33,460 nucleotides of DNA from Macrostomum lignano. Lineage: Eukaryota. Positions within the stretch are counted from its first letter, which is position 1, and every line of letters starts with the position of its first letter. The position numbers and the translations under genes were made by a program. Positions 1 to 33,460 of this stretch are shown piece by piece. Where the stretch lies: assembly GCA_002269645.1 (NCBI GenBank), contig NIVC01004849.1, positions 1 through 33,460 of the forward strand, in the 5' to 3' direction. The notes below the pieces were generated by a model that was given only the letters and a program-made list of their open reading frames with translations, was not told the DNA's origin and ran no database searches.

Positions 1-830
1 ACTAGGCTAGGCTTAGGACTTTATCAAATATCAACTGTCAACTGACATTATAATGTTAGACTAGATTTTAGGGCATAATAATAACCACACACACAAAAAA
101 ACTTAAATTTAGGCAGTAACTCTGATGGACATGGACTATGGTATGATTTTGCATTAAAAAGTGTCTCTTGCTGTTAATTAACTAATAAATGATTTAAAAG
201 TAGCAGACCCTAACTAACAAATTTAGATTTATGTAATATGATTTAACACAACAATGCACTATGTCTATGTTTCACAACAACAGATACAATGCCCCAGCGC
301 TCAAGCTTTTTTAAAATAGTAACTTTAACAGCCTATGCCTAGGGTAGGCAGGCCTTAGGCACTGCACACACCACATGTTTAAACTAGTTTCTGCGTAAGC
401 CTATAAATAACAAATTAGATTTACATTAATTAGGCCTGCATTATTTAATACATATATAAATAATGTATATAGGGGTCGATATATGTGGGCATAAGGACCT
501 GGCTATATTTTAAGAGTATTTATCTAGGCCTATAATTAATAAAGGGATTTATGTAGAAGCAAATATCTATAGCCTATAGGACGGAAGGGAAAGGGAAAGG
601 GAAACAAGGTGCGCTTTACGTTGGATTTTTTGGAATCCTTGGAAGTCAGTTCAACAAAAATGTGCGGAATTTTCCTACCTTCTAAAAATAAGAACAAAAA
701 AGAGAGTTTTCAGTACACCCTAATTAATATCAATATCTTCCTTAACTACTTTAGCTAGGCCAAAAACCATTTTAGAAAGAATACAGAATCGTTTTGTTTT
801 AAGTGACAAAAGTAAAATTTAACTTTGCAC

Positions 831-3800
831 TTAACCATTGTCAGCCGGGTCGTTCTCAAATTCTGGGAGGAGCGAAAATTTTAACAATTTTCCGAACATT
901 TACTATTGTTACTGCCGTATTGAAAATAATAGGACACTTTCATCCGTGAATAAAGATAATTTTTGGGTTGAAATTTATGTTGCAAAAGTGTTTTAAGTTG
1001 TCTTGCGGTATTAGGCGATATTAGGTGATGAAAAAATTCAAATTCAATCACTTCACCGATGTCGTAATTTTTGACACTATGATGTCTATAGCTAAAAAAA
1101 GTTGTTGTTGTGTTGAAAACTTGCTGTATTACATTTAAAATGAAAGCTTATATAAATTTAATTTAAGATTTTTTTTAAAGCTTAATAAACTGCACTATAA
1201 ATGATTTTATAGACGCTTAACTGTATGCCTAGCATTTCCGGTGGGATAGCCTCTTTGCGTCTCACAAAATGTATTTTTCAGCTGACGTCTAGAATGTGCG
1301 CTTAAAATGATATATTTTGATGCAGATAATTAGAAAAACATGTCTTATTATCTTTTTGTAAAAAATTGTTATGAAATAGAGCACTATTGTTGATAAAAAT
1401 AATTAAAAGCAACCATGCATCGCAATAAACTCCTACTTTGAAGCACAAAATAAATATCCTGTAACCACACTAGCATTCTCCATGGAGCACCTTTTGAGCT
1501 GAAATTTTACACAGATATCCAGTAAAGTAAACTGAGCAAATGATTTTTTTTGTTTTTGAAAATACTTCAATTTGGCTATGTATCAGTTAGTTCATTGGAC
1601 ATATTTATTATATTTTTATTAGAATCCTTGTAACCAAGCTACAGAGAAACATGTGCAAAACTGGACCTTGAAATTTGACCTGAATGATCAGCAAATGTGT
1701 ATCTCGAAATGATTTTTTTTGTTTTCATCAAGTCATTCTATGCTAATTTTTTCTGAAGGGAAAGATACCATATATTTAGAGTCAATAGGGGAAGCATTTA
1801 GACTTATTCAATAGTCATTAAAATTGCAACTATATTATTATAATATAGTAATAATATTATACATGTATTATATAGTAATATTAACTTCTAAGATGCCCTT
1901 ATAAATTTAAGTAAAGACAACAGGCCTTAATTAATTAATCAGCATTTTGAAGAAACTGACCTTATACAGATGGGCCCCAAGCTAAGAAATGAATGTAGAG
2001 CTTATTTCGTGTAAGGTATAAAAATCAATTTATTATAATATTAAATACTCCTAATAAATTGGTTAAATTAGTTATTTACCTTGAATTAATTTAATTTAAT
2101 AATAAATATATAAATTTGTTTCACTTCTTACTGCATTTAAATAGAGTACCTCTCTACTATACTATAATAGTATAGTAAAAGTATATATTAAAAAAGTATA
2201 GTAAAAAATTTTCTTTGGTTTAATCCCACCTTGCCTCAGTTTTTTAGTCTTAATACGAGCTAGATAGTAAGTGTTGATTAATTTGCTCCATCACCTTTTG
2301 CCACGGAAACAGCACATGTCGGACATGCAACACTCTTCCTGATCCCTGGATTCAAGATGACTGCTTCTGCTTCTTCAATGCTTGAAAACTGAGCTCATGG
2401 AGCTTTAGGTTATGCTGTCAGAGTGCTGCTGCCGGTGCTGTGTGTGTATGTGTGTGTCTTCTGCGGGTAGGTTCCCTGTCCCTCAGTTTAGCCACTGTTG
2501 TGGGCTAACTGGAGGAATTGCCGTTGTCGGTGCTGCAGATGGCACTGCATGGTAGTATTGACGCTGTCAGTGACGCTGGCAAAGGCTTGGACAAAGCTAG
2601 GTGCCGTCATTGTCAGGAGGACATGCGTGTGCTGCTTAGACCAGTGCGCACATTCGACTGGACTCGTATCTGGTGCAGTCTGGTGTATTCACTGAGATTG
2701 TGTGGATCTGCCTCCTCGCATCACCTCAACCAGGCTCAATTTCTTTTGTAGAATTTTCGTGCGCTGCTTAACTGCATCTTGTGCCTGCTGAGTGATGCCA
2801 AGAATTGTGCCACACAATAATTTGGCCCATAAACTACTCGTATATTATACATATGTATGCACAGCACACACACGCAGTTCATTCATATTAAATGTACTAG
2901 TTAATGGAATTCTCATCTCATGAGCTCTAGTCTATGGACAAACCTGAAATTACTAGAATATCTAGATAGATCTAAACTTATTTGAGCAGCGCGCTGCGCT
3001 GCGAGCAAATACATGTAGATTCCTTAGTGCAACTAATTAATAGTGTCGTACAGTCTACAGCCTGAAGTAGCCTGTGTAAGATGCGGAGGGATGATTTTTG
3101 CATAGGAAGCCACTACGGTAAGGTTGATGGAACTATGGGGAGGTGAGAGATTCAAAGCGAGGGACGGAAGCCATGCATAGTTCGATCATAAGTTTGATTA
3201 TTGCATGAGTCTGGGGATGCATTAACGAGAGGCGGACGAGAGCATAGAAATAAAGCGGGCTAAATATATGAATACACAAAATTACATGTACTAGCTAGTA
3301 ATTTCAGAATGGTCAGCGACTCCTCCGATTTGTATCCGCGACCGCGTGCCCACAAATCCCCCGGCAGACTCTGTCGCAGTTGGTGGTTGTGCACAGAATA
3401 CAATGTTAATTTTCGAGCTTCTCTGCAAAAAATGCGTGATGCACTCAAGATGCGTGCTATAGTCTACTTCTTTGATTGATGGCTGGGTTTTGCCTTTTCG
3501 CTTGTGATCATCAAAAGCTTGGGCGTCATTGCTACTGGTGTTTCAGTGTGCGCATTATGTCTGGTTATCATATTATGTGCATGTGCAGTGTCTTTTACCT
3601 ACATTTTTGTTTGTCTCTGTTTCCTGCATGCTCTTTCGCATTTTTACACCTCGCACATCCTCATTTTTCTCAATTAACAAGTGAAATCTTTTCTTAAAGA
3701 CTAATTGCTATTTTAGTTAAGCTAGTAGGTTTTTGGTAATTAAATAATTCAATTTTGTCTATTTTCCAAAAAGTTTCAAAAAATGAATTAATTAAAATAA

Positions 3801-4650
3801 ATTTGAATTATTTTAAGTTAATTGGAGTAAAATGTCTAATAAGTAACTATAATTTTTTATTTTAAGTACATGTAGCTTTGGTATAAGTATTAATGTAATG
3901 AGTACTTAAAGTAAAATCAAGCAAGTTATAGTTTTCAGAAATTATGCTACAAATAATCAAATATATACTAGTATCCGAATTCCTTTATTAAGGAACATGC
4001 AGTCGATATTAAATCCACAATGTGCTCTTTGGTGTTCAAGGATAGTTCCCTGACTTTTTCTATTATTAGTTAGATTTTATTATATTTAATGTAAAAATGA
4101 ACAATTCTATTCAAGGTAAAAATGAACATTCTTTATTTGTCGAATCATCTTGCCTTTGAAAAGATACATAGTGAAAACTTGATTTTTAATTCAAACTTTC
4201 AAGACTTATTTAGACTTCTTAATTCAGTGATTAGTTAAACTGATCGAAGTTCTTTCGAGTGCATGCTATAATAATTTCGCACTTTTTCGCACACGATAAT
4301 TTTAAATGTCTGGGATTTAGAGCAGAGTAACAAAATGCTGTGCTCAAAAACATTTCCTTTGTCAATTTCTTGTTCTTTTATTTTTGCAAAAGAAATTTAA
4401 CTGCATATTTAAAATAAAAATGGAAGAAAATTTTATTTTCTCTTTTAATATTTTTGTCGTTTATTTTCCGCAACAAAGAATAACAAATAGCCTTGATTTC
4501 TTCTCAATTTCAAGTTTTCTTGTGGTTTTAGTAGCAGCTTCTTACAGAAATTGTTGAAAGAATTTTTTTTGTACGATTATTAGTCGATGTATAAACTTTT
4601 TTTGCAATAACAAAAAGTTGTGACCTAGCTTTGAGAACGACCCAGCCATG
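831..4650. mobile_element. Candidate decayed piggyBac-like non-autonomous DNA transposon (right end incomplete)
   Basis: Left end reads TTAA-CCATTGTCAGCCGGGTCGTTCTCAAA (831-860). An inverted copy of the inner part, TTTGAGAACGACCCAGC, lies at ~4630-4646. The interior is mostly AT-rich. The outermost right TIR bases and the right TTAA are missing, and no transposase is recognisable. Confidence 0.35.
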
Positions 4651-6628
4651 GGCCTGTATGGCCAAATTCAGCAGGCTTTGTCTGAGCCAAACACGTACCA
4701 GTACCACATAACTAGGACTACAACCAGATGTGTCTAGCGATTCCCCCTCGGATATGGACTATAGAGTCCGGAAAGTGAACGGTCAGTGTCACAGCCCTCT
4801 ACTAACTGAACGACAACGAGTTGGCCAAGCCTGAGGAAAGGAGCATCTAATTCGCAGAAAAGCAAAAATTCGTGAGACGCTGGTGCTTCGTCAATGAGTT
4901 TCTGCAGTTTTCGCCTCTCGTAGCCATTATGCAGGACTGGAACGCTATAGTTGTTAAAAAACTAGGCCGCAGATCTCATTTGACTTTACATGTAGTTTCG
5001 GTCTCGAAGCAAAAATCTCTTCTTTCACTGCTTTTCTTATTTTATCACTCATAAATTGCGTTTTATCTTAGAAAGGCGCCGCCGGGGTTCAGTTGCGGGA
5101 CGAGGCATGTACTAAACTGTGTGGCTGCATGGTTAGTAGCAATTGCATCGAGCGACGGCTTCTGCTACCTCACACCGTCTCCGACAGTCGGTTGTATGCA
5201 CACCTCCGAGTCCCCTGATTTTGTTCTTAGCTCCAGTTTGGATACGGAGAGCAGATCGTTGTGTCAATCTTTTTTATCAGTAGCGTGATCAGTGCAGGCC
5301 TAGGTTGCAGAGCGTATCTGTAAGATGAAAAAGTGAATCATGGATGCAGGAAAGCTTTTTAAAAATGATGCGGGCAGAATAAGTCTGTATATCTCTGATA
5401 CCTTGCAGGAACGCAAAATGGCTTCACCCAACGTTTCTCAAAAAATCTAACCAAAGCTTCACCACCTTTGATATGGACAATGACAACAGCATAGACTCTA
5501 GAGCCCGGTGTTATGAAAATTCAATGAAAGCAGAGTTCGAAACCCTGATTACGCGGATTTGATTGAATGGGTGACTCACAACTCAATACCCTATCGACAA
5601 TAAGCAATGCGAGGATAACAAACAATGCTATATTTTTTCCGCGGGAAGATTGCAATAAACTCATCTAGTCTGATGACAGTTATTTAAAGTACAGAACGAT
5701 TTTCAGTCATTTTAATTTTTGTTGACTTGATTAGCTAGCGTTAGCTTGAATGAGTCTCAGCGAGAAATTGAACCCAGCGAGGACGTTACGTGTCGGCACA
5801 GGCTGAGGTCGCCGTTTTGCCTTGATCGTTCCGCGCTTTCCGAAAGCCAACTGTTTCTGAATTAGCTGGAGGCCCACGACAAGTGGTGATTGCTTTCCCT
5901 CTGATAAAAAAATCATGAGAAAGAAGGTCCATGAACTAGCTCATGCCATTAACGAACAGGGTTGATCGAGGTTACGGCACTCATGATAGTTCATCGGGCC
6001 TTGTGTTGACTCACTCAAATATGTCAAGCTACATGCAAATACGTTCTAATGCAATACTAGACCTGCATAAAAGATCCCACCCGTAGGAATCCAAGCATGC
6101 AAGACCCTCGTGCAGCTATGGACGATTACGGCAAGATATGGGAATTTTCATATGATGTAACCACGCTCTGGTCGCGGGATAGGGCATGGGAACTTTTTCG
6201 TAAGTGCCTCCTATCCCGTGTACCCCCCTGCACAGAGCCGTCGAGACTCGGCCAGGTTTCCGACCAGTCCTGGAGACTCCCGCTCTGCTGCACCCCCCTG
6301 CTGCCTTGGTTCCGTCTCCCCTGCCGCCACACCTGCCTTTCCGGAGCTCCCTGTCCCTCTCTGTACCCTCCCCTCTACCTTATCTCCCCTGCACTCCACC
6401 CTATTCTTCTGGTACTTCCCCTATCCCCCCCTCTTTTGTCTCTCTCTGCACTCTTTTCTTGCGCTGTCCCCTCTTTCTCTACGTCTACTTACAGTATGTT
6501 GTGTGCTCACCGTCCTCCCATCCTTTCCCAAACTCCCAAACGGTGACGCAAGTCGTGTGACCCCTTCTCCCCCCCGATGACTCATCGATGACTCACCCCC
6601 CTCTCTTGCGCAACCTTTTCTCATGCCA

Positions 6629-6935
6629 TTGTTCTCCTCCCCAAATTTCTCATGCGACACCCACCCCACCTCCGCTTCTATTGTTCTCATTTTTGATTCT
6701 TTTGTTCTCTCGACCCCCACCAATTATCACATTTTCTCCGATTTTCTCTTTCTTTTGTTCTCGTTTTCGCACCTAATTATCACCTTTTCTCCAATGTTTA
6801 CTTTTCCATTGTTCTCAGTTTTCCCCAATTATCCCCGATTTCCAATTCCTTTGTTCTCGACCCCAGCCCTATTGTTCTCAATGTTTGCTTGCGCAACACT
6901 TTCGCGACCACCCGCTGCGCCAATTATCCCCCCAC
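6629..6935 (+). repeat. Pyrimidine-rich U3-like array of short motifs (TTGTTCTC about 7 copies; (C)CAATTAT/CTAATTAT about 4 copies)
   Basis: Repeated motifs read directly in the C/T-rich part of the LTR upstream of its TATA box. Confidence 0.55.
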
Positions 6936-7001
6936 CCCACCTCCGGATTGCGCAATTTCCCGATTTCTCATGTTGCTATGCCGGTCTCATGCTTCTCATC
7001 A

Positions 7002-7093
7002 TGACTCATTCTGACGTCATTCTGCCGGCAGCCAATCAGAGAGAGGGAGCCATGGTAACGACCTTGAGGAGGCGGCTGTGAGGTCTATAAAAG
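7002..7093 (+). promoter_or_regulatory. RNA Pol II core promoter inside the solo LTR: AP-1, CRE, CCAAT box, RFX X-box half-site, TATA box
   Basis: TGACTCA 7002-7008, TGACGTCA 7012-7019, CCAAT 7032-7036, CCATGGTAAC 7050-7059, TATAAAAG 7086-7093, in canonical order and spacing. Two further TGACTCA sites lie at ~6578-6594. Confidence 0.7.
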
Positions 7094-8724
7094 GAAGCGA
7101 TTTCGGCATGAGAATCCTCAGCCTGCTCGACTCTTCCTCTCCTCGTCCTTCTTTGGACTTGCTGTCAGATTGAGTTCTGACCCATTCGTCTATAAGACGA
7201 ATCCCTGCCAGTCCGCGGTCTGCTACCGCCAAGTTATCCTTAGCTCCCCAAGTGAGCTCGCCTATCGGCCAGCGGTCTGATACCGCCCAGCATCATCAGC
7301 ATCGCCTGATCTACATCAGCGCCTCGTCGCTCCAGCGCATCGCCGCTTCACTGTCTGCCTGACTGCAGCCTACAGCCACCCTCGGTCACTCCGCCTCTCT
7401 CTCTCTCTGTGCAGCTGCCGGTAAGTTCCTGCTACTAATTTGAGCTCTAATTGCCTCTGCTTATCCGGGGTTTGCCTATTTTCCATTGTCTGATTAGAGA
7501 TCTGAGCCAATTGTGATACCGTATCTTTTGCTGTATTTTACTCAATAGTGAAGCCGCCTAATTGCCTGATTATTCGCCTAAGGGCCTAATTATTAACTAT
7601 TAACTAACTTCATCATTATTCAATCTTTCACCATCATTTAACTCATGGCTTGCTAAGCCTTTCTCCCGGGGTGGCAAAGCATAAGGGAGTTTGGGTAAGC
7701 TAATGGCCTCTCCCCGTGCAAAGCCCGCCTGTGTGAGTGCGTGCGGCGGGTTCGTGAGTGCGTGCAGTGGAGGGTGATTAGCGAGTCTTGGCACAGAATG
7801 GCAGTAGGAAGGTTGCAACCCCATGCTAACGCGTCCCTTCGCCCTGAGCAATCTAAACTATAGACAGTACATGTTCGCCTCATACTACTCTTAGTAATCA
7901 AAGTCGCAAGTCAGCCTCGCTCACAGCCACAAAGGATCCCCTGCTGAGAAATCCTCCAGGATTGAGCCAGAGTTCCCGATCATGCCTTAAGCAGAGTCCC
8001 TGTACTCGGCTGCATGCGTCTCCCCTGTTAGCCTAAATCCCCTGGTAACCAATCCAGGCGGGGCTCTAGCCTCGAGAGGTCTGGTAGAAAGATCCAGGTG
8101 CGCCAGGTCACATAGAGTGGTGGCAGCCACTCGGTCATACCATGACCGAGTGACCAACTATTGCACCTTGGCTACAGGTGGGGTCCATGTGGGTCCTTGG
8201 CCCTCTGGTCACGAAGCGCTACCAAAGCTACTAATCATGTGGGCGGGACAGTCTGGTGCTGGAGGTCCGTCAGGTCATTGCCCGGTCATAGGCAGCCTAC
8301 GGTCATCGCCCCCTCTAGCCAAGCGTTCGTCTCTCTATAGGAGCGGACAGGCGACAAGGGCGGTTACATCACATATTCTTATTAGATCGATCGAGGAATC
8401 AATAATATGAAAAAGTACTCATAAATCCTCACATGCACTGGTTCAGTGGTTTCTATGGTTTTGTGATACGTTTCGATTATTTGCGCTTAAACTGACGAAA
8501 GATGCTTGGTAGGTGTAAAACTAAAACGTAAACGGCTGAAAAGTGGGGGATACAGAGTATTCCCGATTTACCCTTAGTATCTATGGCATAATGCATAAAT
8601 AAATGCACAGAATGCATTCGTGTCTTACTAATTGACCCCGGCTTTGCTTTATAAAGCATGTCGCGCTAATATATTTGTACATGTTGTTTATCAAAGCTGT
8701 AGGCTACATGTGCATGCATCAACA

Positions 8725-11209
8725 ATGACTTGCTCCGGTACGCATCCTGATTCCCTTCAAATCGCCCAGACAGCAGTGCCGTCGGGTAGCACCGGAGACG
8801 AAGCCAGCAGCTCCAAACGGGCAAACTGCAAAAGCGCGGTTATTCTAGCCCACCCGTTTCCTCTAGCTGACGTGGCGGATGCCTTTCGAGATAAGTACAG
8901 AGCGTACATTGGCTATACAATTGAAACTGCAGGACAGCGGGAGCTCACTACTCATATGAGCAAGAATGCAATTGAGTAAGCTTTATTTCACTCGTCTATT
9001 TCTATACATTTATTATTATCCTGCATTGAACAATACTGATAGCTTTCACAAATGAATACTGTTTGGATTAGGGACAGGAGTGTGCTCAACCAGTAGTCTG
9101 CGCCTGATACCTGAACTGTTGTCATTGTTGCAGCAGATATAACTAGCCAACCATAATACTTCAAGTGATCTCGTGCACATACTCCACAAACGAACCAGAA
9201 AGAATACGACCGCAATGTCTTCATCATATCACTGCAGTATGAAAAAGTCAATCGAGTGCCTCGGATTCAGGCGTCTGGACGAAGACATGGCCGAGTGTTT
9301 GCTAGCTGATGCCGATAAACTGTCTCTGACCGTTTTGACTTCTGGCGACGAGAATCCAGCCATCTGTAAGATATCCGTATGGGGTTTTTGATCAGTACAA
9401 CACGGTTGATCTATTCGTAAAGTAAAAATCTTAATTTAGCACTAATAGCTTTTAAAACAAAAATATATTGGATAGCAGAGTAGCATTAGTCATTCAAAAT
9501 TATATTTTTCTTGAAGGCGGTAATTGATTTTGTAATCGTTTACTTTGTTCTATTAGTTCTTCTACCCGACTTGGAAAGTAGAAATTAAACCATGTATTGA
9601 AAGCTTTTTGTAAAGCTGAGTGGAATAAACTAAAAAGCGAAATAAGCAGAACGCGATTGGTACAAATCGAATTACTTCTATAGCTGGTCCAAGCTTCCTG
9701 ACAGCAAAGCTGAAGGCCGAGCCGCTCAGCGAAATTCTGGCCTGCGACTGGCAGCTTCACCAACACCTGCGACAGTTGGAGGAGAAATTGAGCCAAGCCA
9801 ACATAAGCTTCCTTACTGATTCCGGAAGAGTTTATAATATTGAATACTTCCTTCCGTTGGCTGTCTGCATGGCAGATGCCAAACATCTTGAGGAAACCCT
9901 CGGTGAGAATTTACGCAAATGAATTCATTGAATTAATGCGATTTTTGACAAATCTTGTCCGATAAATCATTGCAGCATCTCGACCTGGCAAATATCTGAT
10001 AAAATCATCCAGGTAAAGTTATATGCGGCAACTAGCAACAAAACTGAGAGTTAAATATGAGCATTGACACATGGCAGAGCTGCAGGGCCTTGGCGTGTAG
10101 GTTGCGCTGTTAGTACCATGCGAAACGCAGAGTCTGCATCCGTCTTCTTGCCAGTGCCTGCAGTGTCATTAGCGACTTCTCCTGCACCGCTTGTGGGCTG
10201 TTAACTCTGACTCTGAGTTTTGTTGTGGACCTGTGCGGAAGCAGTTGCTTGAATAGTGTTCGCTCGTGTTCAATTTCATGACTGGCCTTTTAATTATCTC
10301 GTACACTTCAGTGCATTATTTCATTCATCATTTTCTAAATCTTTTTAAGCCGACAGTTTACTTTACAGCCAACTTAAAAATAACCTTCCCTCGATTGCCA
10401 GCAGAAGTTCGAAACCTCGCCAGCGACAGCTGATTAACGTCCAAAGCAGCAACTCCGCAAAGGCTATCCGCGACTGCCTTCTCAGCGGGACACCTTTGCA
10501 ACAAGCGTCGCTACAGGCCTATATTGAGCAGCCACTGCTGGTTGACAAGCGCAAGTTCGACATCCGCACCTTCTTAATGCTTGTCTGTCCAAAGCGGGGC
10601 GGAGCTGGTGGCCGAACAAACGATTCCGGCTACTTCGCCTTCCACCATCCGGGCTTCCTGCATCTTCGTCTCGAGCCATTCAACCCGCAATATCCGGAGC
10701 CTTCGCAAGACGGACCGAAATATCAGACGAGTCAGCAGCTCATGGAGGCTTGCACATGGTATCCGGACGAGCTCAACGCTTACTTGAACAGAAAAAAAGG
10801 CTTCAGAATGCCCCCAGACTGGGTCAAAGTTAGGCTGTATCCACAAGCGAGAGCTGTTCTGGGCTACCTAGCTGGCTTGCTTCGATGGAACCTACATGAT
10901 CGCGTCTCCGCAACCAGCAGCTTCCGCATCATCAGCGCCCACATGCTTCTGGACGAGAGCCTCAGACTGCACCTGCTGAAGTTGGACGATGATGCGCCAA
11001 ATTGGAGCCGCCCAACCAGCGTGGTGGACTCCGTGCTGTCGAGCATTTGGCAGGAGGCTGTCTGTCTCGCATGCGAGATTGCCATCAGATTCAGAAGCGG
11101 CAGAACCATCAGCGATGATCACTTGGTAACCAGGCGGAACTTTCGCATGGTCTACAGCTCAGAGGATCTGTGTCTCGCCAGACAGAGCGTCACTTTGATG
11201 TACGACTGA
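8725..11209 (+). CDS. Divergent tubulin-tyrosine-ligase-like protein, closest in motif layout to TTLL10; exons 8725-8975, 9238-9365, 9684-9902, 9976-10012, 10369-11209 (~491 aa); start codon tentative
   Basis: All four introns are GT-AG and join in frame (1,476 nt total). TTL motif QAYIEQPLLVDKRKFDIR is present. TTLL10-like segments are YIG, EYFLP, YLIK, TWYPDELNAYL...PDWV, SFRIISAHMLLDESLRLHLL and C-terminal RRNFRMVY. AATAAA at 11323-11328. Confidence 0.8.
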
Positions 11210-11917
11210 TAGAGTTGCATTTCAAGTGTACTTGATAGTGAAATTTTCTCTTCCTTTTTAGTTTATCGGCCTTGTCTTAAAAATTGTACCATACTACTCG
11301 TTTTGCTAAGAGCAGGCATAGGAATAAATGCATGCATTTATTGTATCATTCTGTCTTTTTCAATCTAAATAAAGCACTTAGCTGTTCGACTCTTTTCATA
11401 AGAGATCTGAATTATGATGATATTTAAATTCTTACGTCTGAAGACGTATGAAGCTCGCAAATTCGGGAAGTACTTTTAATGACTACGAGGGCCGGGCACG
11501 TAGGAAGGGGTTGGGAGAGCGATAACTGTCCAAGATTCTTTAAGCGATACTCTTGAGGATAGTAGCGTGTTCACGCTTGAAAAAGTCAAATGACTACTAT
11601 GCGCAGGTGAACTATAGTGGGTAATCATAGGGCTAGAAGCAGTTGGGTGATTTTCCCACAAAGCCCAGCTTCTCATCTTTTTTGAAGGCTGATTACTTCA
11701 ATTTGAAGGTGAACAATATTGAGGTTATTAGAGTTAGAGGTTATTACGAGTAACTCAAATTTAGTAAGACAAGGAGCCTCCTCTCTGCGTCTATTACTTT
11801 ATTGTAGTTTATTTAAAGACACATAATTGCTTCCACAATTGTTCCAGTAACGAGTTAATCAAGTCCTATTTCAGCTTTATCATATCAGCCTAGCATAAGC
11901 TCTGCAGCTCGTATGCC

Positions 11918-12609
11918 TCATTCAGCCATCCAGATGTCGTCACTTACATGTATTTCGCCGCTCAAGGCGGTGGCAAAGCTGTTGAGGTGTCAGAGGCCGC
12001 TGCTGCCGTTGAAGCAATACGGGGACTTGACCAGACTCTTCGCCATGCGAGCTCAGCCCAGAGAGAGGTTGCAAATTCCGCAGCTGGGATGAGCGGATGG
12101 GCGGCGGAGGCGGTGACCTTGTGAAATCGACGGCCCTGGGAGCCTGCATGCAATGTGGGAAACGTATGGACAGAATACACTACATTTCACAGACGGAAAG
12201 TGAGTGAGAGTGAACATTCTCACAGATGGAATTTCTCTTGACTAAACCGTAAAAGCCGCATTTCCAGTGCAATAATCGTCTTTGCACTCCAGACCCTGTT
12301 GCTGAACCGCAGGAGCCGTAGCAGGAGCCACACTAATAGTAAAGGCCTGTCTGCACGCCTTCGTATCGAAAACCGCCGTACAGATCAAACATCGTGTCTC
12401 CTCTGGACAAGATCACCTGTCTATCGTAGTTAAATATAAACGGGCCGATCTGGTCGATGCCGGCAAGACCCCGCAAGTCTCTGTTAGATTGGTCAATGAG
12501 GCAGCTGGCAAAGACTCTAATGGCCTTCGCTGCCCCAGCAACTCGCGGAGACTAGCAGAACGGCCACTGCAACAGCTGCCCAAGCAGCGAGGACTCTGAT
12601 GTGGCTCAT
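11918..12609 (-). pseudogene. WSC-PAN paralogue copy 1, pseudogene
   Basis: Signal peptide MSHIRVLAAWAAVAVAVLLVSASC is followed by a degenerate WSC (SCLIDQSNRDLRGLAGI...YGGFRY, in-frame TAG, deletions) and a PAN remnant YCFNGSSGL*HL, where TGA at 11992-11990 replaces the conserved Cys. Several frameshifts. Confidence 0.75.
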
Positions 12610-13279
12610 ATCTTTCAGTGTTAAACTTATTTGTTGACTGAATTGAACCATGTTATTTATTACATGCCTTTCCGCACAGGATGGATGTTAAGCAAAGGCA
12701 AAAAATACACTGGAAGGAAGCTGCGCAATGCACGGTCAAACATTCTAATTTGGCAACCATATAATACAGAGACAGAAACCTTTAAAACATTGATTATAAA
12801 TGCAGTATGCAAATCCCTAACCCCTATCATCCCGTCTTTCAGAACTATTAGACCAAATATTGTCAATTCAATGGGTTAAGCAAGGCTGTTACTGTTTAGA
12901 GTCAGTTATATTAAATTCGAAAAAGCTATAAAAAATCCATCAGATCGATTCTACAAGTATTGCAACTAGACCGACCATATTTGGCTAGTCTAGGATTATT
13001 CTGGGATTTATTCTCACTTCTGTTAGAAAACAAAACCAACAAAAATACATTCTTTTTTTATTTTCACAGATTTAAAGGTCTGAATTGTGTTTGCAATTGT
13101 ATTTGTCGTAAATAGCTGCAAAAGTCTCTCTCTTATTAGTATTTATTATTGCACTCGAATCTAATAGTTAGTATTTCATTTGTGCCTTCGTCACCGAGTT
13201 CATGCACTGATTCAAAAAGTTAGCCAGCATAGTCTTCAGTCAAATCAGGAACAAAAAACTTATCCTGGACTTCAGGGCT

Positions 13280-13997
13280 TCAGCCGACGATCCAGACATC
13301 GCCAGTCTCCTTGTCGAATGCGGTGGCGAAGTTTCTGAGGCGGCAGAGGCCGCTGCTGCTGTTGAAGCAATAGGAGGAGGAGCTGGCAGACCGGGCGCAG
13401 GAGGCGCGCAATCATCCGACTCTGCGCCTTGACGTCCCAGCCCAGGGAGCCAGGCAGTGGCGACCAGCTTTGGAGCGACAGAGGTGGCGAACTTGCGAAA
13501 GCGAGTATTTTGCAAAGCTGAAATAGAATTTTTAAGGGCATAGAGCTCACTTTTCTCTATTGTAGCTTATTAGTAAAAATCTAACACTTCTCGACATACT
13601 CACTCGATGAGTACACATTTTCATAGATGGACTTTTGCAAACGACCTCCGCAAATCTGGCTAGCATTCCCGTAGCAATTCGTGTTTCACTCGGACTCTGG
13701 CGCTGGACCCCAGGAGCCGTAGCTGAAGTCGCACGAGCAGAAGCCGTAATCCTGCACCGCAGTGAATCGGAAACCACCGTAGGTGCAGATTTCACTGCAC
13801 AGCTCCACCGTCATAGCAAGTCCAACATCGATACCTTCTCTGGAATACTTGACTCTGAATGAGGCAAATTCTGCGATGCCAGCAAGGCCCCCAATGTCTC
13901 TGTTTAGTGCGTCTTTGTCAACAAAGCAGCCACATAGACGGGAGTGGCTTTGCGCTGGCAGAACGGCAAGCGTGACAACAACTTGCAGCATAGTCAT
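13280..13997 (-). pseudogene. WSC-PAN paralogue copy 2, pseudogene; exons ~13997-13604 and 13517-13280
   Basis: WSC GCFVDKDALNRDIGGL...MTVELCSEICTYGGFRF...CSCDFSYGSWG with TGA (13688-13686) in place of a conserved Cys. Deletion in the signal-peptide region and an 8-nt deletion in exon 2. PAN tail CFNSSSGLCRLRNFATAFDKETGDVWIVG*. Confidence 0.8.
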
Positions 13998-14954
13998 TTG
14001 CGGCGACTGAGATGTGCTTAGCAGCTTGGCAGGAAAGTAATGTTGCTCACAAGTTCTTATAGATGTCAAATGCATTGATAATAGGATCGCGTCTAAAACA
14101 TCAATATTCATTGCTTTCATGGGCTAATGGCCCCGACCTGGAGACACAAAAAACGAATTGACGAAGTGTATAATGTTGATCAAGTTTGCATGCCTTCTCC
14201 AAATAAAATTGACCCAGGAAGAATGAGATACTGGCTAATGGACTCGAGAAAAATTCGAAAAAAAGAGAGATAAAAAGTCAGGGTATTGGCTTGGTTGTGC
14301 AAGTTCTAGTTGTCCACGATGGCATACCGAGATGAGAGGTTGCGAAATGGAACGATGAACGAACAAAGTCGGGGGTAGTAGCCTCATCAAAACAAGCTGA
14401 TAAGCACGGTAAATTGATCAGATTGACAAGCACTGCCCAGAATGAGTAAACATAAGCTAAGCTAAGCTAAATTATTTAGGGTAATCTGATGCGCGCTACC
14501 TTCAAGGTCAGCAACGTCATAAGTTGCTTTAGAGAGGGAAAGAGTAGAAGTATTGTTTTAACACTTCGTAATTAAGTTTCCAAAGACTCTCTGAGTCTGG
14601 AGTCAGGGGTGCTGCAACTGCAGATAGAGAGTGTTGAATGCCTCCAGTGCCAGCTCATGAATCAGAATCCATCAGTCAGCTTTCATGTAATTAGGTGAGA
14701 AGCTCATCAAACTGGATTCTCAAGTTACTCCGCATCTTCTTTCATTTTTGCTTTACTTTGAAAATGCAACGATAGCCGTTTACCGTAGAATGAAAAAGAA
14801 GAAAATAAAAATCTATGATAAAACCAATTAAAACTTAACTTGCAAATGTCTTTGCTTTCTAACCAAAATTTATTATCAATTTCAAGTAGTTGGTCTGACA
14901 GGATTCCAAAAAACACAATGGGAAATCGAGTCATCGAAATCGGGCTCCGAGGCT

Positions 14955-15812
14955 TCAGCCGATTATCCAGACATCGCCAGTCTCCTTGTCGAATGCGGTG
15001 GCAAAGTTGCTGAGGCGGCAGAGGCCGCTGCTGCTGTTGAAGCGATACGAGGAGCAGCTGGCAGTCCGGGAGCAGGTGGCGGCGCAATCGATCCGGCTCT
15101 GCGTCTTGACGTCCCAGCCGAGGGAGCCGGCGAATTCGGCAGTGGTGACCAGCTTTGGGCGGCAGAGGCGGCGAACTTGCGGAAACGATGTACCTTGGAT
15201 CCTGAAAGTTGTTTTTTGCATTCGAGCTTGTTGGCAAATGTTTCAGGATAGTCTCAGCTTTCTCGTGCTTTACGAGCTTAAGTTGTACATTTAACCTGGT
15301 CGAGTGGAATTTTGTACTTTTTTGATCCCGGATGCATGAAAACTATTAGCTTTTAGTAAACCAGATCGGAATCCGAAAAAATTGTGCTCACCCGAGAAGG
15401 TACTCTTGTAGATCGAAGCCCGCAGAGAACTACCGCACACCTGACCATGATTGCCAGAGCAAGGATTGCTGCACTCGGCTTCCGGAGCGGAACCCCAGGA
15501 GCCGTAGCTGGAGTCGCACATGCATTCATTACTATTCTGCACTGCGGCGTATTGAAAGCCACCGTAAATGCAGATTTCGCTGCACAGATCCACAGTCATG
15601 TCATGTCTGGACACGATGCCTTGGCTTGGGTGTAAGACACTGTATATGCCAAGCTGGGCAACACCAACAAGTCCCAGCATGTCTCTGTCGGGTGGAAGTT
15701 TGTCAACGAAGCAGCCGACGTAGACCGGAGTGGCCTTGCGCTGGCACAGCGACTCACCGGCCAGCAGAGCAACAGCCAGAACATTCGCTAGCACGGAGAG
15801 TCTGCTCAACAT
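14955..15812 (-). CDS. Secreted WSC + PAN/Apple protein, copy 3; exons 15812-15392 and 15201-14955; one 1-nt deletion in exon 2 (real or sequencing error)
   Basis: Signal peptide MLSRLSVLANVLAVALLAGESLC, 8-Cys WSC domain, phase-1 GT-AG intron, PAN-type DCAATCSRTASCSSYRFNSSSGLC. Exon 2 is 247 nt, one short of in-frame; alignment to copy 2 (SVAPKLV) places the missing base in a C run near 15160. Confidence 0.75.
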
Positions 15813-16437
15813 GGTTTGTAGAATAGGTGGGGGTGGTCGATTTTGCTGTCTGTGACTCTTTCTTGTATTGCCTAATGTAGCCTTGATGGCGCCTGTCAAA
15901 CTGTTTCATGACTTTATAGATCAGCTCAGGCTAGGCTTTCTGAAAGATTTCTTTCTCTATGCAGGAAGTTTGCCAGGCCGCATTGTCTGTGCGGTGGTCG
16001 CTGATGATTGATGCCGATGAGCTGAAACTGCGGAGCAAACCGGATGGATTGAATGAGAGACAGAAGCTCTCGGTTAAATTTGTCCGCTCAGTAAGAAGAA
16101 GGAAAAGCAAGTCGATAAAGCTGTCTTACAATCATCGATTGAAAAGCAGTAAAAAATAATAGGACTAATTTAGGAAAAGATTTGAACCAATCGCCTAGGA
16201 AATCAAGCTCCTCGGACTCGCTATTAACAACAATTACAATTTTTGGGCATAGCAACAATATTCACGAGGCAGTGTATTTTAAGACATTACATGATCAGCA
16301 CATAACCACACGCTTTACCTCGTTCGAGATTCGGGAAGTCGCCAACACAACAGTATCAATAGCACAGACAATTGTCAATGCCATATGAATGAATTATAGA
16401 TCCGAACTCACTTTATATTACTCTATAGGATTTTAAG

Positions 16438-16732: not shown

Positions 16733-17551
16733 TCAAGTTGCAATCCAGACGTCGCCGGTCTCATTCGCCAAAGCGACGGCGAAGTTGCTGAGGCGGCAGA
16801 GGCCGCTGCTGCTGTTGAAGCGATAGGAAGAGCAGCTGGCAGTCCGGGCGCAGGAGGCTGCGCACTGCATCCGGCTCTGCGCTTGACGTCCCAGCCCAGG
16901 GAGCCGGCGAATTTGGCAGTGGTGACCAGCGGAGGGGAGGCAGAGGCGGCGAGCTTGCTAAATTCACGGCCATGGAAGTCTGCAACAAATACATAACCAG
17001 TTTTTCAAAATCAGTACAAGGGTTGTACTTTTACTTTTGCATCGGAAAAATTGCTTTAGTCGCTGCCACTTAATCTTTTTGGGAATTTTTTGGGAAAAAG
17101 GATAAAAAATACTGGAATTTCCTCTCACTTGATGGGTACACATTCTCGTAGATTGAGTTCCTGTACGCTCCACCGCACATCTGCTTAACGTTCCCGAGGC
17201 AGTGCTGGTTACACTCAGTCTCTGGCGCGGGACCCCAGGAGCCGTAGCTGGAGTCGCACGAGCAGGTGGCATAATTCTGTAGGCGGCGAACCGGAAGCCG
17301 CCGTAGCTGCAAATTTTGCTGCACAGCTCAGCTGTCATGTCGGACCTGGACAGAATTCCCTGCGTGATGTAGGTGACGCTGAATGGGCCGAGCTGGGCGA
17401 TGCCAACGAGGCCCTACATGTCTCTGTTTGGCGGAGCTTTGTCTCTGAAGCAGCCCGCGTAGACCGGAGTGACTTTGCGCTGGCACAGCGACTTGGAGAC
17501 CAGCAGAGCCACCACTACAGCAGCCGTTGCTGCAGAGAGTCTGGGACGCAT
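16733..17551 (-). pseudogene. WSC-PAN paralogue copy 4, pseudogene; exons 17551-17129 and 16979-16733
   Basis: MRPRLSAATAAVVVALLVSKSLCQRKVTPVYAGCFRDKAPPNRDM* has an in-frame TAG at 17416-17414, plus one frameshift in each exon. The WSC and PAN cysteine patterns are otherwise complete. Confidence 0.8.
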
Positions 17552-19403: not shown

Positions 19404-21348
<1,945 letters not shown>

Positions 21349-24066: not shown

Positions 24067-25085
24067 TTAGTTGGCGATCCAGACGCTGCTGAAGTTTCCA
24101 CTCGCCGGGATGGCGGTGAACCGGCTGACCCGGCACAGCCTTCCGCTGCTGTTGAACCGGTAGGCCAGGCAGTCCCACTGAGCAGCCAGACGGCAGATGG
24201 TCGCGCACTGGATCAGATCAATAGCCGGCAGGCTCAGTTCGGCTGCTCCTTTGAAGTTGGCATCGAGAACTAGCAGCGGGACGGTGGCGGCGGCGACTCG
24301 GCGAAACCGGCGGCAGTCGCTGAGCTGCAAGCTATCTATAGGGTTTTGGATAGCAAATTTCACTGTTGATTTGCATTGGTCCCTGATGAACGATTAAAGT
24401 CAAGTTCGGTTTCCTTGACTTTACATTCAAATGAATGCTGGGTGCAAACCAGATGACTTAATTAACATTTCTTTCCTAAACCGGAACGGAATCTGATGGT
24501 TGCGGACTCAGTCTAACATAAAATTCGAGCTCTAATTTACAACTATTTGCCTATTTTGACTGTGTTGTAGAATAGGAAATTAAGATTTATCATAGAACAG
24601 TTGTGCAGAAACTTCAACTGAACAAGAACTATGGTTCCCTGATTCGCAACTGCCCATTGGACTGTACCTGAGTACACGTTCTCATAAACGGAGTTGCGGA
24701 ATTGGCCACCACAGGTTTGAGACACATTGCCCATGCAGGCCATGTTGCACTCCAGCTCGCTTACTTTGCCAAGCGAACCGAACTGCCAGTCGCAGCTGCA
24801 CTCCTTGCTGTATTGGAGGGCAAAGTACCGGAAACCGCTGATGTCGCAGACCCGGCTGCACAGCTCCACCGTCAGAGACGGGCTGGACAGAATTCCCTTC
24901 TCCGTGTGATTGACGCCGAATTGACCAAGTCTGGAAATTCCAACCAGACCTACGATGTCTCTATTTGGCATGGCCGCATCCGCGTAGCAACCAACATAGC
25001 TGACTGCGGCTACAGTTCGCTGGGCCAGCGACGGAGCGACTAGCAGAGCTGCAGCAAACACGACAAGTTGCAGGCGAATCGCCAT
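24067..25085 (-). CDS. Secreted WSC + PAN/Apple protein, copy 5, intact; exons 25085-24668 and 24335-24067 (228 aa)
   Basis: Signal peptide MAIRLQLVVFAAALLVAPSLA and 8-Cys WSC (YVGCYAD...LTVELCSRVC..GFRYFALQYSKECSC...ECNMACMGNVSQTCGG). The phase-1 GT-AG intron joins in frame (418+269 nt). PAN-type QCATIC...DCLAYRFNSSGRLC. Several N-glycosylation sequons. Confidence 0.88.
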
Positions 25086-26236
25086 CTTGGACTGTTTTGG
25101 AAAATCCTGCAGCAGTTGCGTCTGAGCAAAGACATAATAGAAAAATTGAAAGCTGCTTAACAAGCCGGCAGGATTAACTCATCAGAAGGCAACTGGTCCA
25201 CCGTCTCTCTTGCTTTGGATTGGAGGAAGGAAAATACTTGTAAAAACTGGCTGCCGTTGTTCCCAGCCTTCAAAAACTGACTGCAATGATTTCTGTTTGA
25301 GAGCACATGGAGAGTGCAATATAAATAGAAGATCATGGTTGAAACCTACCTACATTCAGCTTACTTTGCAGCGTTAGAAGAAAAAATACATGAATTTTGC
25401 GTTGTGTCTACAAACATCCAATTTTTAGACCGGGTTCAGCATTTGGCCTTTTTGTTTCACCGATCCGCCGTTCAGCATTCATGAGCCAGAATGTAAGGAA
25501 GCCATTATGGGTCTGTTCCATAGGCTCGCTCGGGAGCTATACGAGTAGAAAGAATGGGCTGCACGTAGAAGAGAGCGGATGCCAATCGGATAATAATAGT
25601 TGTAAACGTTTCGAATTTTGGCTGAAAGGAAAATCGACAACTATATTTCAGCAAAGCAAAAGTTCAACCAGAGAAAACCCGAGACGCGGGACTTTGCAGG
25701 ATTCAAATGGCATGTCTAGTCGATAAAAACCCCGTTTGAGTCGAAGTAAAGCAAAGTCTTTAGGGGGGTTCTATTCGTGCAGTCCATGAGGTACTCAATT
25801 GATGGCTGCCTAAACTCCGACGCCATGAGGCTTTGGACGGGTGCCAAAACTAATTAGCCACTATAACTAACTCCGCAAGCATCGCGTACTTATCATCTGC
25901 AATAAGTTCCGTTTGAGAGCGATAACGTTTAAGTCTAATTTATGTCAGCTTCACGCCAAAAGGGATGGAACAAGGGAAACATATATGTTAAATATCGAGA
26001 TTCAAAAAAACTAATTCCCGGTTCAGATTAGCATTCCCGGTTGCCTGCACAGAGACTCTGAGTAATTTAGGCTTTTACGCTACAAGGATTTCAAACTATG
26101 CAGTGCCCTCTGTTGCCTGTAAACTCTGTCTTCTATCTAACTACAGCTCGATCGCCTGAACCGAAAAATCTTATTTAAACTTCAGAGCCTTTGATTGGGA
26201 GGTAGCAGAGCAGCTCAGCGGGAAGCGCGTCGGACT

Positions 26237-26551
26237 CTTGCGTCACGACACCCTGGTTCGCCTTGCGTCACGACACCTGGTTCGTTTTGCGTCACGACAC
26301 CTGGTTCGTCTTGCGTCACGACCCCCTGGTTCGCCTTGCGTCACGACCCCTGGTTTGTCTTGCGTCACGACCCCTGGTTTGTCTTGCGTCACGACCCCTG
26401 GTTTGTCTTGCGTCACGACCCCTGGTTCGTCTTGCGTCACGACCCCCTGGTTCGCCTTGCGTCACGACCCCTGGTTTGTCTTGCGTCACGACCCCTGGTT
26501 TCGTCTTGCGTCACGACCCCTGGTTCGTCTTGCGTCACGACCCCTGGTTCG
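26237..26551. repeat. 24-bp minisatellite CTTGCGTCACGACCCCTGGTT(C/T)GT, 13 copies
   Basis: Contiguous units of 24-25 bp with no spacers. It explains the CVTTPG/RHDPWFVL artefact ORFs. Confidence 0.95.
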
Positions 26552-28504: not shown

Positions 28505-29687
28505 TCAAGCTTTCCTATCATCAGAGTCCCAGCCATTATCTTTAATCAGGTGCGCCAGCTCGATAATGTATTTTCCCTCTTTGTAGCGCTGCGAGCTCTC
28601 AAAGGCGCGCTCGTATTTCCAGCCTAGTACGGTTCGACAGCCGTGACAGTAAATGTCCGCCACGCTGTGCAAGCCAGTGAGCAGCAGCCGCTCCTCCGCT
28701 GGACCAACAATCACGTTCACTACGCGATCGAATAGGTAGGCCCTGCCCTGGCTGCCCTGTGGGTCGGAGAGATTGGCTGCTCTGACTAAACAGTGTCTGA
28801 ATTTAATAGGCTAGCTCCTATACAAGGACTGTTGGAATGCTTAGTCAGGGAAGGAATTGAGGTGGCTGACTGGACTGGAGATGCGGGGAAGGGAAGGGAG
28901 TGGGGTGGCTGGCTGGACTGGAGATGCGGGGAAGGGAAGGGAGTGGGGTGGCTGGCTGGACTGGGGATGCAGGGAAGGGAAATGAGTGAGGCGGCTGGCT
29001 GGACTGGAGATGCGGGGAAGGGAAGGGAGTGGGGTGGCTGGCTGGACTGGAGATGCGGGGAAGGGAAGGGAGTGGGGTGGGTGGCTGGACTGGAGATGCA
29101 GGAAAGGGAAGGGAGTGAGGCGGCTTTCTGGACTGGAAATGCGGGGAAGGGAAGGGAGTGAGGTGGCTGGCTGGACTGGAGATGCGGGGAAGGGAAGGGA
29201 GTGGGGTGGCTGGCTGAACTGGAGATACGGGGGAGTGAGGTGGCTGGCTGAACTGGAGATGCGGGGAAGGGGAGTGGGGTGGCTGGCTGGACTGGAGATG
29301 CGGGGAAGGGGAGTGGGGTGGCTGGCTGGACTGGAGATGCGAGGAATGGAATGGAGTGGGGTGGCTAGCTGGACTGGAGATGCTGGGAAGGGAAGGGAGT
29401 GGGGTGGCTGGTTTGGATGGAAAGATTTCATGTACCAGTGTCCACAAGTAAGCAAGCCCAACCAGCCACTATGAAAGAGTTGCTAATAATTCAGCAAGCC
29501 TTACATGAAAACTCTTGCTAATTAGGTCAGCATGAGCAGCCAGGTGAGCTCGGCAGTGCATGCAGGCATAGGTGCGCTCGCAGTCGCCATTGGGTGACAA
29601 CTGGTCAACACCACTGACACTGCTGCAGACTCGACCATTGCCACTGTTATTGCCAATGTCAAGATAAACTTGAAATGTCCTGCCCAT
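28505..29687 (-). CDS. YPEL: Yippee-like protein (YPEL1/2/3-type); exons 29687-29505 and 28756-28505 (144 aa)
   Basis: [24 protein letters not shown]|[76 protein letters not shown]. Both CxxC motifs are intact, and the phase-0 GT-AG intron falls at KSF(H)|GSQG. Confidence 0.95.
28858..29412. repeat. G-rich ~43-bp minisatellite in the YPEL intron (~13 copies, some shorter variants)
   Basis: Unit TGGGGTGGCTGGCTGGACTGGAGATGCGGGGAAGGGAAGGGAG read directly. It is the source of several artefact ORFs. Confidence 0.95.
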
Positions 29688-32181: not shown

Positions 32182-33460
32182 TCAGGCAATCTCGATAGCA
32201 GCCGCCTTCTCTAGGCCCAGCTCCTTGATCACGTCCTCCCTGAGCTTGAACTTCTGCACCTTGCCGGTGACGTCTCTAAACAGAACGTAGCGCGGGGATC
32301 TTGAAGTGGGCGATTTCATCCTTGCAGTAGGCTCTGAGCTCCGCCTCTGTCAACGAACATTCCAGGCCGTAACGGACGAACAACGCAGAGCTCCTCGCCC
32401 ATTCGTTCGTCTGGTACTCCGACGATTTGGGCGTCAGCGATGGCTGGATGCCGTGCAGAAATTCTCAATTTCTACCGGGTAGATGTTCTCCCCGCCGCGG
32501 ATGACCATGTCCGGATTCGGCCTCGAATGTGACCGTAGCCGTCAGCATCCAGAAAGCCGATGTCGCCGTGCGGTACCAGCGGTCCTCGCCGATCACCTCC
32601 GAGGTCTTCTCGGTGTCGTTGAAGTAGCCGCGCATCACCGCATAGCCCACGGATGCAGATTTCGCCGCGCTGTCCTATTGGCAGCGCGCGGCCCTCCGGG
32701 TCCTGCGATTTTACCTCCATGTGCGCCGACGGACGCCCAAACTGAGGCCGTCCGCTTCTCCAGACTGTCGTCCGGCATGCCCTGAAACGTGACAGGGCTG
32801 TTCTCCGTGGTCCCGTACGCAATGTCACGCGGTCCATGTGCAGCTCGGACACGATTCGGCGCATCACCTCCACCGGACAGGCGATCCGGCAATGATGCCA
32901 GTTTGCAGCGACCGGAGATTCGCTTGCTAACGTCAGGCCTGGGACAGATGTCGATGAACATTGTTGGCGCGTGCCATAGAGCGCCGTGCACTTTTCCGTC
33001 TCTACAGTGCTCAAAGTAGCCGCCGGTTCGAAGCTGGGCGACGATAGATGCAGGTTGCTCCGTGCAGTACAATCTGCAGGTTGCCAAGGCCCATGCCGAA
33101 GCAGTGATAGAACGGCACCTGAACGCAGATGCGCGCCACGTGTTTGTGGAATTCGCCACCGCATGCCGACGAACGTACGCATTGTTAGAATATTGTGATG
33201 CGTTAGCGCCGCTCCTTTCGGACTGCCTGTATGCCCGAGGTGAACTGGATGTTGATTACGTCGTCCATTTGCAGGCGCTCGGCGAGTTTGTGAAGCTGCT
33301 TCCGCGTGTGGGATCGGCGCTTCCGGCTCGACACACCTCATCGTACAGAAAGGCACCCGGCCGCTCCTCCTGACCCATCATCACCACGTGAGACAGCGAG
33401 GGCATGACCGAGCTTGACAGACGCCCACTCGCGACTTTGGCAGCTCCGGCAGAGTTCACA
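32182..33460 (-). pseudogene. ACSF2-like AMP-binding acyl-CoA synthetase, 3' part, many frameshifts (pseudogene or uncorrected assembly); 5' end lies beyond the window
   Basis: Motifs across frames: DDVINIQFTSG(T)TGSPKGAALTHHNI, PFYHCFG, AYGTTENSPVTF, GEICIRG..VMRGYF, WYRTGD, DMVIRGGENIYP, GVPDERMGEE, KIPRYV..., TGKVQKFKLRE. Stop codon at 32184-32182. No intron seen. Confidence 0.85.

Follow-up and report, generated by a model that had tools for sequence, protein, structure and literature searches.

The window analysed here is the entire contig NIVC01004849.1 (33,460 nucleotides, nt) of the Macrostomum lignano assembly GCA_002269645.1 (Mlig_3_7), and the gene under study, at 8725-11209 on the forward strand, encodes a relative of the TTL/TTLL ligases that write the tubulin code. 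It is an intact gene that lacks the catalytic residues of this family, which confirms the observation of an initial annotation made from the letters alone. Six-frame translation and inspection of the splice sites give one spliced gene, whose five exons are separated by GT-AG introns and which runs from the ATG at 8725 to the TGA at 11207-11209, with exactly the start, stop and exon number given in that annotation. Its product, for which about 491 amino acids (aa) had been announced, counts 479 aa in the annotated protein, and the discrepancy is due to alternative in-frame acceptors: 9166 and 9199 for exon 2, which lead to 504 or 493 aa, and 10402 for exon 5. The spliced product is the annotated M. 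lignano protein BOX15_Mlig010902g1 (P0001, "hypothetical protein", partial), by which the exon boundaries were set; a model using two other acceptors is 95% identical to P0001 and, apart from the acceptor differences, the same. The two remaining frames of the spliced sequence contain 19-21 stops. The exons are the following:

8725-8975 (+): exon 1, 251 nt, with the ATG, aa 1-84; GT donor at 8976; agrees with P0001 and P0002
9238-9365 (+): exon 2, 128 nt; acceptor cactgcag/T set by P0001 (KNAID/MKKSIE)
9684-9902 (+): exon 3, 219 nt, parts of the N-terminal and central domains; its counterpart is the 213-nt exon 3 of the paralogue P0003
9976-10012 (+): exon 4, a micro-exon whose 37 nt encode ASRPGKYLIKSS, with the ATP lysine K209
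10405-11209 (+): exon 5, 805 nt including the TGA, with the degenerate loop, the hinge, KFDIR, the former HLTN region, the former Mg ligands and the C-terminal helices

The acceptor of exon 5 is a NAGNAG site (10402 or 10405; ccagCAG/AAG, 10400-10405), of which the annotation takes 10405; its upstream AG would add one Ser inside the degenerate loop.

The locus is present in four assembly copies, in agreement with the redundancy documented for Mlig_3_7 (PMC5730564). Three contigs are identical over window positions 1-13000 (0 substitutions), and the fourth copy, identical from 9681 on, carries two nonsynonymous changes and one synonymous change in exon 1 together with a few intron changes. The differences of this fourth copy are scattered as far as 9680, and it is devoid of window positions 847-4642, which are AT-rich, extend over 3.8 kb and contain neither a notable open reading frame (ORF) nor terminal repeats. 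The public models of the locus conflict with one another: P0001 is 5'-partial, P0002 is without exon 4, P0094 begins in exon 2, and P0095 fuses the gene into a protein of 2668 aa. The UniRef name of the 451-aa model P0002, "Mab-21 domain-containing protein", and the name of the fusion P0095, "protein kinase domain-containing protein", are apparently mistakes of annotation.

Active-site residues lost and kept

The window protein was aligned with 61 relatives, comprising 13 M. lignano paralogues and TTLL10-type proteins from vertebrates, a monogenean, a ctenophore and others, and the TTL numbering was mapped through a HMMER alignment to Xenopus TTL. In TTL, D318 and E331 coordinate two Mg ions on the ATP phosphates and R202 holds the acceptor carboxylate; the E331Q enzyme is catalytically dead (PMC3563685, PMC7293026). 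The columns that matter for catalysis read as follows:

TTL D318 column (Mg ligand, GxDF): H391 here, D in 61/61 others
TTL E331 column (Mg ligand, LLExN): K404 here, E in 61/61 others
TTL N242 column (HLTN): S321 here, N in 61/61 others
TTL N333 column (LLExN): D406 here, N in 56/61 others
Gly of GxD (GxDF): S389 here, G in 59/61 others
Pro after the ATP lysine (KP): S210 here, P in 53/61 others
Gly/Gly/Ile of the loop: P216/Q218/R219 here, G in 58, G in 52 and I in 51 of the 61 others

Among the 62 sequences, the window protein is the sole one altered at the D318, E331 and N242 columns. The column of the first loop Gly, which holds Gly in 58 of the others, shows two gaps and one Ala in the remaining three. 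The residues that are kept are K209 (TTL K150 column), Q249 and Y251 of the adenine-hinge motif QxY, and K262, D264 and R266 of KFDxR, the motif to which the carboxylate-holding Arg of TTL belongs. On the DNA, these changes and retentions fall in five segments:

10405-10432 (+): degenerate Gly-rich (phosphate-holding) loop, RSSKPRQRQL where xxGxxGxGIxL is expected
10514-10567 (+): kept nucleotide and substrate-carboxylate motifs, QAYIEQPLL (aa 249-257) and KRKFDIR (aa 260-266)
10718-10735 (+): former HLTN(Q) motif, KYQTSQ, in a segment 7 aa shorter than that of the paralogues
10922-10954 (+): counterpart of FRIxGVDFLVD, FRIISAHMLLD (aa 385-395)
10973-10999 (+): counterpart of LLE(F/V)NxxP, LLKLDDDAP (aa 402-410), with a one-residue in-frame insertion

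The initial annotation had read SAHM in place of the GxDF aspartate, LLKLDDDAP in place of LLE(V/M)NxxP, no HLTN, and intact QxYIxxPLL and KFDIR motifs, and all these readings stand; the counterpart of HLTN is either YQTS or lies inside the 7-aa gap, depending on the alignment. Its account of the phosphate-holding loop needs correction. The residues of the loop are indeed substituted: YLIK is followed in aa 206-221 by SSRSSKPRQRQL, and the motif KPxxxxxGxGI reads KSSRSSKPRQR. The Ser/Arg/Gln-rich stretch KSSRSSKPRQRQLINV is, however, not the long linker that had been described, since it pairs residue for residue and without a gap with the loop KPARGSMGEHMQLVRI of P0003, the length being unchanged. 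Furthermore, the same 37-nt micro-exon and the same intron divide the loop in the window gene and in the paralogues P0003 and P0004. A missed exon with a Gly loop in the 390-nt intron 4, for which an "AELQGLGV" reading at about 10070-10095 was a candidate, is excluded by this gap-free alignment and by the micro-exon and intron that the paralogues share. Taken together, the data support the loss of the Mg/ATP-site residues in a gene that has retained its reading frame, its splice sites and its fold.

Fold, paralogues and the relation to TTLL10

The Pfam TTL family (PF03133) matches the window protein with 27.5 bits for a cut-off of 20.1, the match being confined to the QAYIEQPLLVDKRKFDIR stretch at aa 260-295, and a PDB sequence search with the single protein gives marginal matches only, so that a profile is needed. 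The QAYIEQPLL/KRKFDIR stretch is the sole part that both searches still recognise. The profile built from the window protein and its five nearest paralogues matches TTL at E = 5e-20 and then TTLL6, TTLL7, Pby1, TTLL3 and TTLL11, and the protein matches its paralogue P0003 at E = 6e-94; to judge from these scores and from the stops in the other two frames, the match lies well beyond chance. The AlphaFold2 model computed from the 62-sequence alignment has a mean predicted local distance difference test (pLDDT) of 82 and a predicted template-modelling score of 0.83. It is weak only in the N-terminal ~35 residues (pLDDT <50), which are predicted to be disordered, and in the former HLTN loop, the sole internal segment of low confidence. 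The best Foldseek matches of the model in the PDB are TTLL11, TTLL6, TTL and TTLL7, each with a probability of 1.00 and with target-normalised TM scores of 0.44-0.70, and on these lines of evidence the window protein has the three-domain ATP-grasp fold of the TTL/TTLL enzymes.

Word-indexed and exhaustive protein searches return close matches from M. lignano only, whose genome contains at least 13 paralogous loci: Mlig027127, 014139, 005294, 030802, 006572/024006, 030094, 027771/011895, 023574, 010031/026571, 002769/015915 and three UniRef-only models. The K..G loop, HLTN, GxD and LLExN are kept in 12/12 of the other paralogues examined. Among them, P0003 (BOX15_Mlig027127g3) has 38-39% identity with the window protein, the same N- and C-terminal architecture and the same five-exon plan with its 37-nt micro-exon, which P0004 likewise possesses at that place; unlike the window protein, P0003 keeps KP, HLTN, GVD and LLEFN, and from these motifs it looks competent for ligation. 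Throughout the sister subclade P0003-P0007, the loop has other residues at its second Gly and at its Ile (GSMGxH/K/M), with the Mg ligands and HLTN kept. Since the loop is already altered in these sisters, its divergence predates the loss of catalysis in the window gene.

TTLL10 is a protein polyglycylase, which elongates glycine chains on tubulin and NAP1. When the first 18 non-spurious matches of the exhaustive search were named, nine came from species other than M. lignano, and 7/7 of the informative names were TTLL10 or TTLL10-like. The TTLL10-named matches belong to skate, paddlefish, eel, rodents, a marsupial, a bird and the flatworm Cichlidogyrus, and one lower-ranked echinoderm match bears the automatic name "probable beta-tubulin polyglutamylase". 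TTLL1, 2, 4, 9, 12 and 13 are absent among the named matches of this search, these six not having been scored separately. P0019, a Caenorhabditis protein of 2177 aa that matches in 21 stretches, was rejected as a false positive, being a translated tandem repeat. The bit scores of the clade profile rank the families in the same sense:

TTLL10: 115-140 bits
TTL: 75 bits
TTLL6: 58 bits
TTLL7: 55 bits
TTLL3: 44-47 bits
TTLL5: 46 bits
TTLL11: 34 bits

In a neighbour-joining (NJ) tree without bootstrap and with an incomplete TTLL1-13 reference, the Macrostomum genes form a clade of their own beside the animal TTLL10 cluster, and the window gene is nested in this clade, where it pairs with P0003 as its sister and has about three times the branch length. 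The "TTLL10-like" label of the initial annotation appears fair insofar as TTLL10 is the nearest named family; read as one-to-one orthology with TTLL10, it is not supported, and the window gene would belong to an expansion confined to Macrostomum, as one of its derived and fast-evolving members. The C-terminal helices that follow LLExN are common to TTLL10 and to the window protein. All the TTLL10 proteins sampled keep the Mg ligands, HLTN and the Gly loop, whereas the window protein, which is shorter with its 479 aa, is without them.

Surroundings of the gene

Beyond the start of the window, the fourth assembly copy carries upstream, on the opposite strand, a gene resembling CC2D2A of the ciliary transition zone (DUF5523/CC2D2AN-C2/C2). 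The other features of the window are the following:

6000-7100: C/T-rich segment with a GC skew of -0.41 and a 53-nt tandem repeat; Pro/Ser/Leu-rich pseudo-ORFs, no Pfam match
13686-14120, 15291-15899, 16964-17338 and 24543-25163 (-): tandem family encoding small proteins with a WSC domain, apparently secreted (PF01822, E = 8e-16 and 3e-14 for two members)
19404-21348: (TTAG)n microsatellite of about 489 units, 97% match
26236-26551 and 28847-29411: minisatellites, one with a 24-nt unit repeated 13 times and one with a 43-nt unit repeated 13.5 times
32472-33356 (-): ORF with a partial match to AMP-binding enzymes (acyl-CoA synthetase-like; PF00501, E = 8e-10)

The WSC array at 13-17 kb has internal repeats of 85-92% identity, and it is there that the assembly copies begin to differ. 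The microsatellite accounts for the extreme GC skew of the composition profile and the two minisatellites for long spurious ORFs on both strands, and the ORF at 32472-33356 is probably an exon of a gene that runs off the end of the contig.

Constraint, decay and possible function

The interpretation that we favour, to which we assign a probability of roughly 0.6, is that the gene is a TTLL10-like duplicate which lost catalysis and has been maintained by selection as a pseudoenzyme acting by binding. In this model, the gene would have been duplicated inside the Macrostomum-specific expansion of TTLL10-like ATP-grasp ligases, and the loss of catalysis would have followed. The Mg-ATP-dependent ligation through an acyl-phosphate, which is common to the TTL/TTLL enzymes, would be impossible for the window protein: because the Mg ligands, the Asn of HLTN and the phosphate loop are lost, no acyl-phosphate intermediate would form, and the protein would act, if at all, by binding. 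The vestigial pocket would accommodate an acidic substrate tail or a nucleotide, and/or the conserved C-terminal helices would recruit partner proteins, and such binding would modulate the active paralogues or compete with them.

The evidence for selection comes from the divergence of the gene. The nonsynonymous distances are 0.61 between the window gene and P0003, 0.61 between the window gene and P0004, and 0.40 between P0003 and P0004, from which a three-point decomposition attributes a nonsynonymous divergence (dN) of ~0.41 to the window branch and of ~0.20 to each active branch. In simulations of neutral point substitution, the reading frame stays open with a probability of 0.07 after 0.05 substitutions per site and of 0.009 after 0.1, and never does so from 0.2 upwards, and with a dN of ~0.4 on its branch the divergence of the window gene is not neutral overall; its neutral share would amount to at most about 0.05 substitutions per site. 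All the indels relative to the paralogues are in-frame, in multiples of three. Furthermore, of the 150 positions at which its five nearest paralogues do not vary, 61% are unchanged in the window protein, for an identity of 28% elsewhere. The ratio of dN to the synonymous divergence (dS) is only bounded from above in the comparison with the paralogues, because dS is saturated (proportion of synonymous differences, 0.67-0.76), and the assembly copies, which are identical or three exon-1 substitutions apart, were rejected as uninformative for this ratio. The picture that these comparisons suggest is one of a purifying selection relaxed but real, with the constraint lifted specifically at the active site, and the gene is apparently not a freely decaying pseudogene.

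Several observations weigh against this interpretation. Pfam recognises only 36 residues of the protein. No orthologue from another species was found among the 1.8 billion representatives searched, and a lineage-specific dN/dS is consequently not estimable. A search of the literature and of its supplements returned no table or paper naming Mlig010902 or reporting the expression of Macrostomum TTLL genes. The retention of invariant sites, when each sequence is left out in turn, is 57-62% for the window protein versus 80-99% for the active paralogues, and the accelerated branch (~3x, NJ) together with this lowered retention would also look like an early pseudogenisation. Finally, a non-canonical metal site made up of Asp406-408 and His391 is conceivable in principle.

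The alternative that survives best, which we nonetheless regard as unlikely, is a young pseudogene that is still open: a redundant TTLL10-like copy in a recently polyploid genome, drifting and not yet struck by a stop codon. The long branch and the low retention of paralogue-invariant residues would be expected in such a case, the many paralogues and the highly redundant assembly (PMC5730564) would provide the setting, the exon-1 differences of the fourth copy (two nonsynonymous, one synonymous) have about the density of those in the flanking non-coding DNA, and the absence of an expression record in the literature searched points the same way. Against it stands a dN of the window branch far above what an open frame tolerates under neutrality, so that a switch to neutrality, if there was one, would be recent and confined to the final ~0.05 substitutions per site at most. 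Moreover, all five exons have kept their GT-AG sites and the frame its multiples of three, the model folds with confidence (pLDDT 82), and the gene model itself was annotated under the guidance of RNA-seq, a genome-guided RNA-seq assembly being the source of the NCBI models of Mlig_3_7 (PMC5730564). The claim of the initial annotation that the gene is a catalytically dead paralogue and not a recent pseudogene is therefore still the best reading as regards the lost Mg/ATP residues and the kept frame, splice sites and fold; the part of it that would have to come from dN/dS is covered by an upper bound only.

It is much more doubtful that the protein is a rewired enzyme, in which His391 and Asp406-408 would bind another metal and Lys404 would replace one of the cations, for ligation or some other nucleotide-dependent reaction. 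The retention of K209, of the QxY hinge and of K262/D264/R266 suggests that the binding of an adenine nucleotide and of a carboxylate may survive, and three successive Asp occupy the former LLExN site. Such a rewiring would, however, have to dispense with D318, E331 and N242, which are invariant in 61/61 relatives, at a site where even the conservative E331Q change abolishes the activity of TTL, and with the phosphate-holding Gly loop and HLTN as well. A Lys at the E331 position is, to our knowledge, without parallel among ATP-grasp enzymes. As for an artefact of annotation or assembly, where the odd residues would stem from a model that is chimeric or mis-spliced, or from errors of sequencing, the disagreement of the public models speaks for it, and we consider it barely credible in view of three contigs that are base-identical across the gene and a fourth identical from 9681 on, of an exon plan that agrees with that of the paralogues, and of deviant residues that need many separate codon changes.

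A pseudoenzyme acting by binding would not be without precedent in the family. Human TTLL10 is said to have been inactivated by a couple of substitutions. According to Rogowski 2009, as cited in PMC4137062, this protein of the TTLL10 lineage is intact, expressed and enzymatically inactive, and the window protein resembles this "inactive polyglycylase TTLL10" in being an intact TTLL10-lineage protein that is read as non-catalytic. The two cases differ in extent: the mammalian and bird "inactive" TTLL10 proteins sampled still carry K, the Gly loop, HLTN, GxD and LLExN, whereas in the window protein the metal and phosphate site is gone altogether. TTLL12, whose TTL-like domain has no detectable glutamylase, glycylase or tyrosinase activity, has been proposed to be a pseudoenzyme, and its TTL domain serves for tubulin binding (PMC10883266, PMC3520985). 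It represents an ancient, widely conserved group of orthologues with an added SET-like domain, whereas the window gene would be young, lineage-specific, single-domain and derived from a TTLL10-like ancestor. By analogy, the TTL-like domain of TTLL12 and the inactive human TTLL10 may serve as precedents for a role by binding only, and the suggestions of the initial annotation, namely microtubule binding and a function in cilia or sperm, are plausible.

In conclusion, since inactive proteins of the TTL family such as TTLL12 and human TTLL10 are already known, the gene alone constitutes an incremental addition. It nevertheless provides a clean natural example of a probable pseudoenzyme among the ligases of the tubulin code, with a sister of identical architecture that keeps the catalytic residues in the same genome, in an animal amenable to RNA interference and transgenesis. 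Pseudoenzymes often prove to be regulators of their active relatives. Of greater interest than this single member, perhaps, is the expansion of TTLL10-like genes to which it belongs, large, specific to Macrostomum and unreported. Could the window protein be the dedicated non-catalytic member of a TTLL10-derived toolkit of at least 13 genes private to Macrostomum, adjusting what its active sisters do on the cortical microtubules of the elaborate sperm or on the epidermal cilia, as a regulatory or targeting subunit or as a competitive "reader" of acidic tails? We regard this as a speculative and rather improbable extension of the pseudoenzyme model. If so, it would be the first pseudoenzyme of glycylase descent to have a regulatory role.

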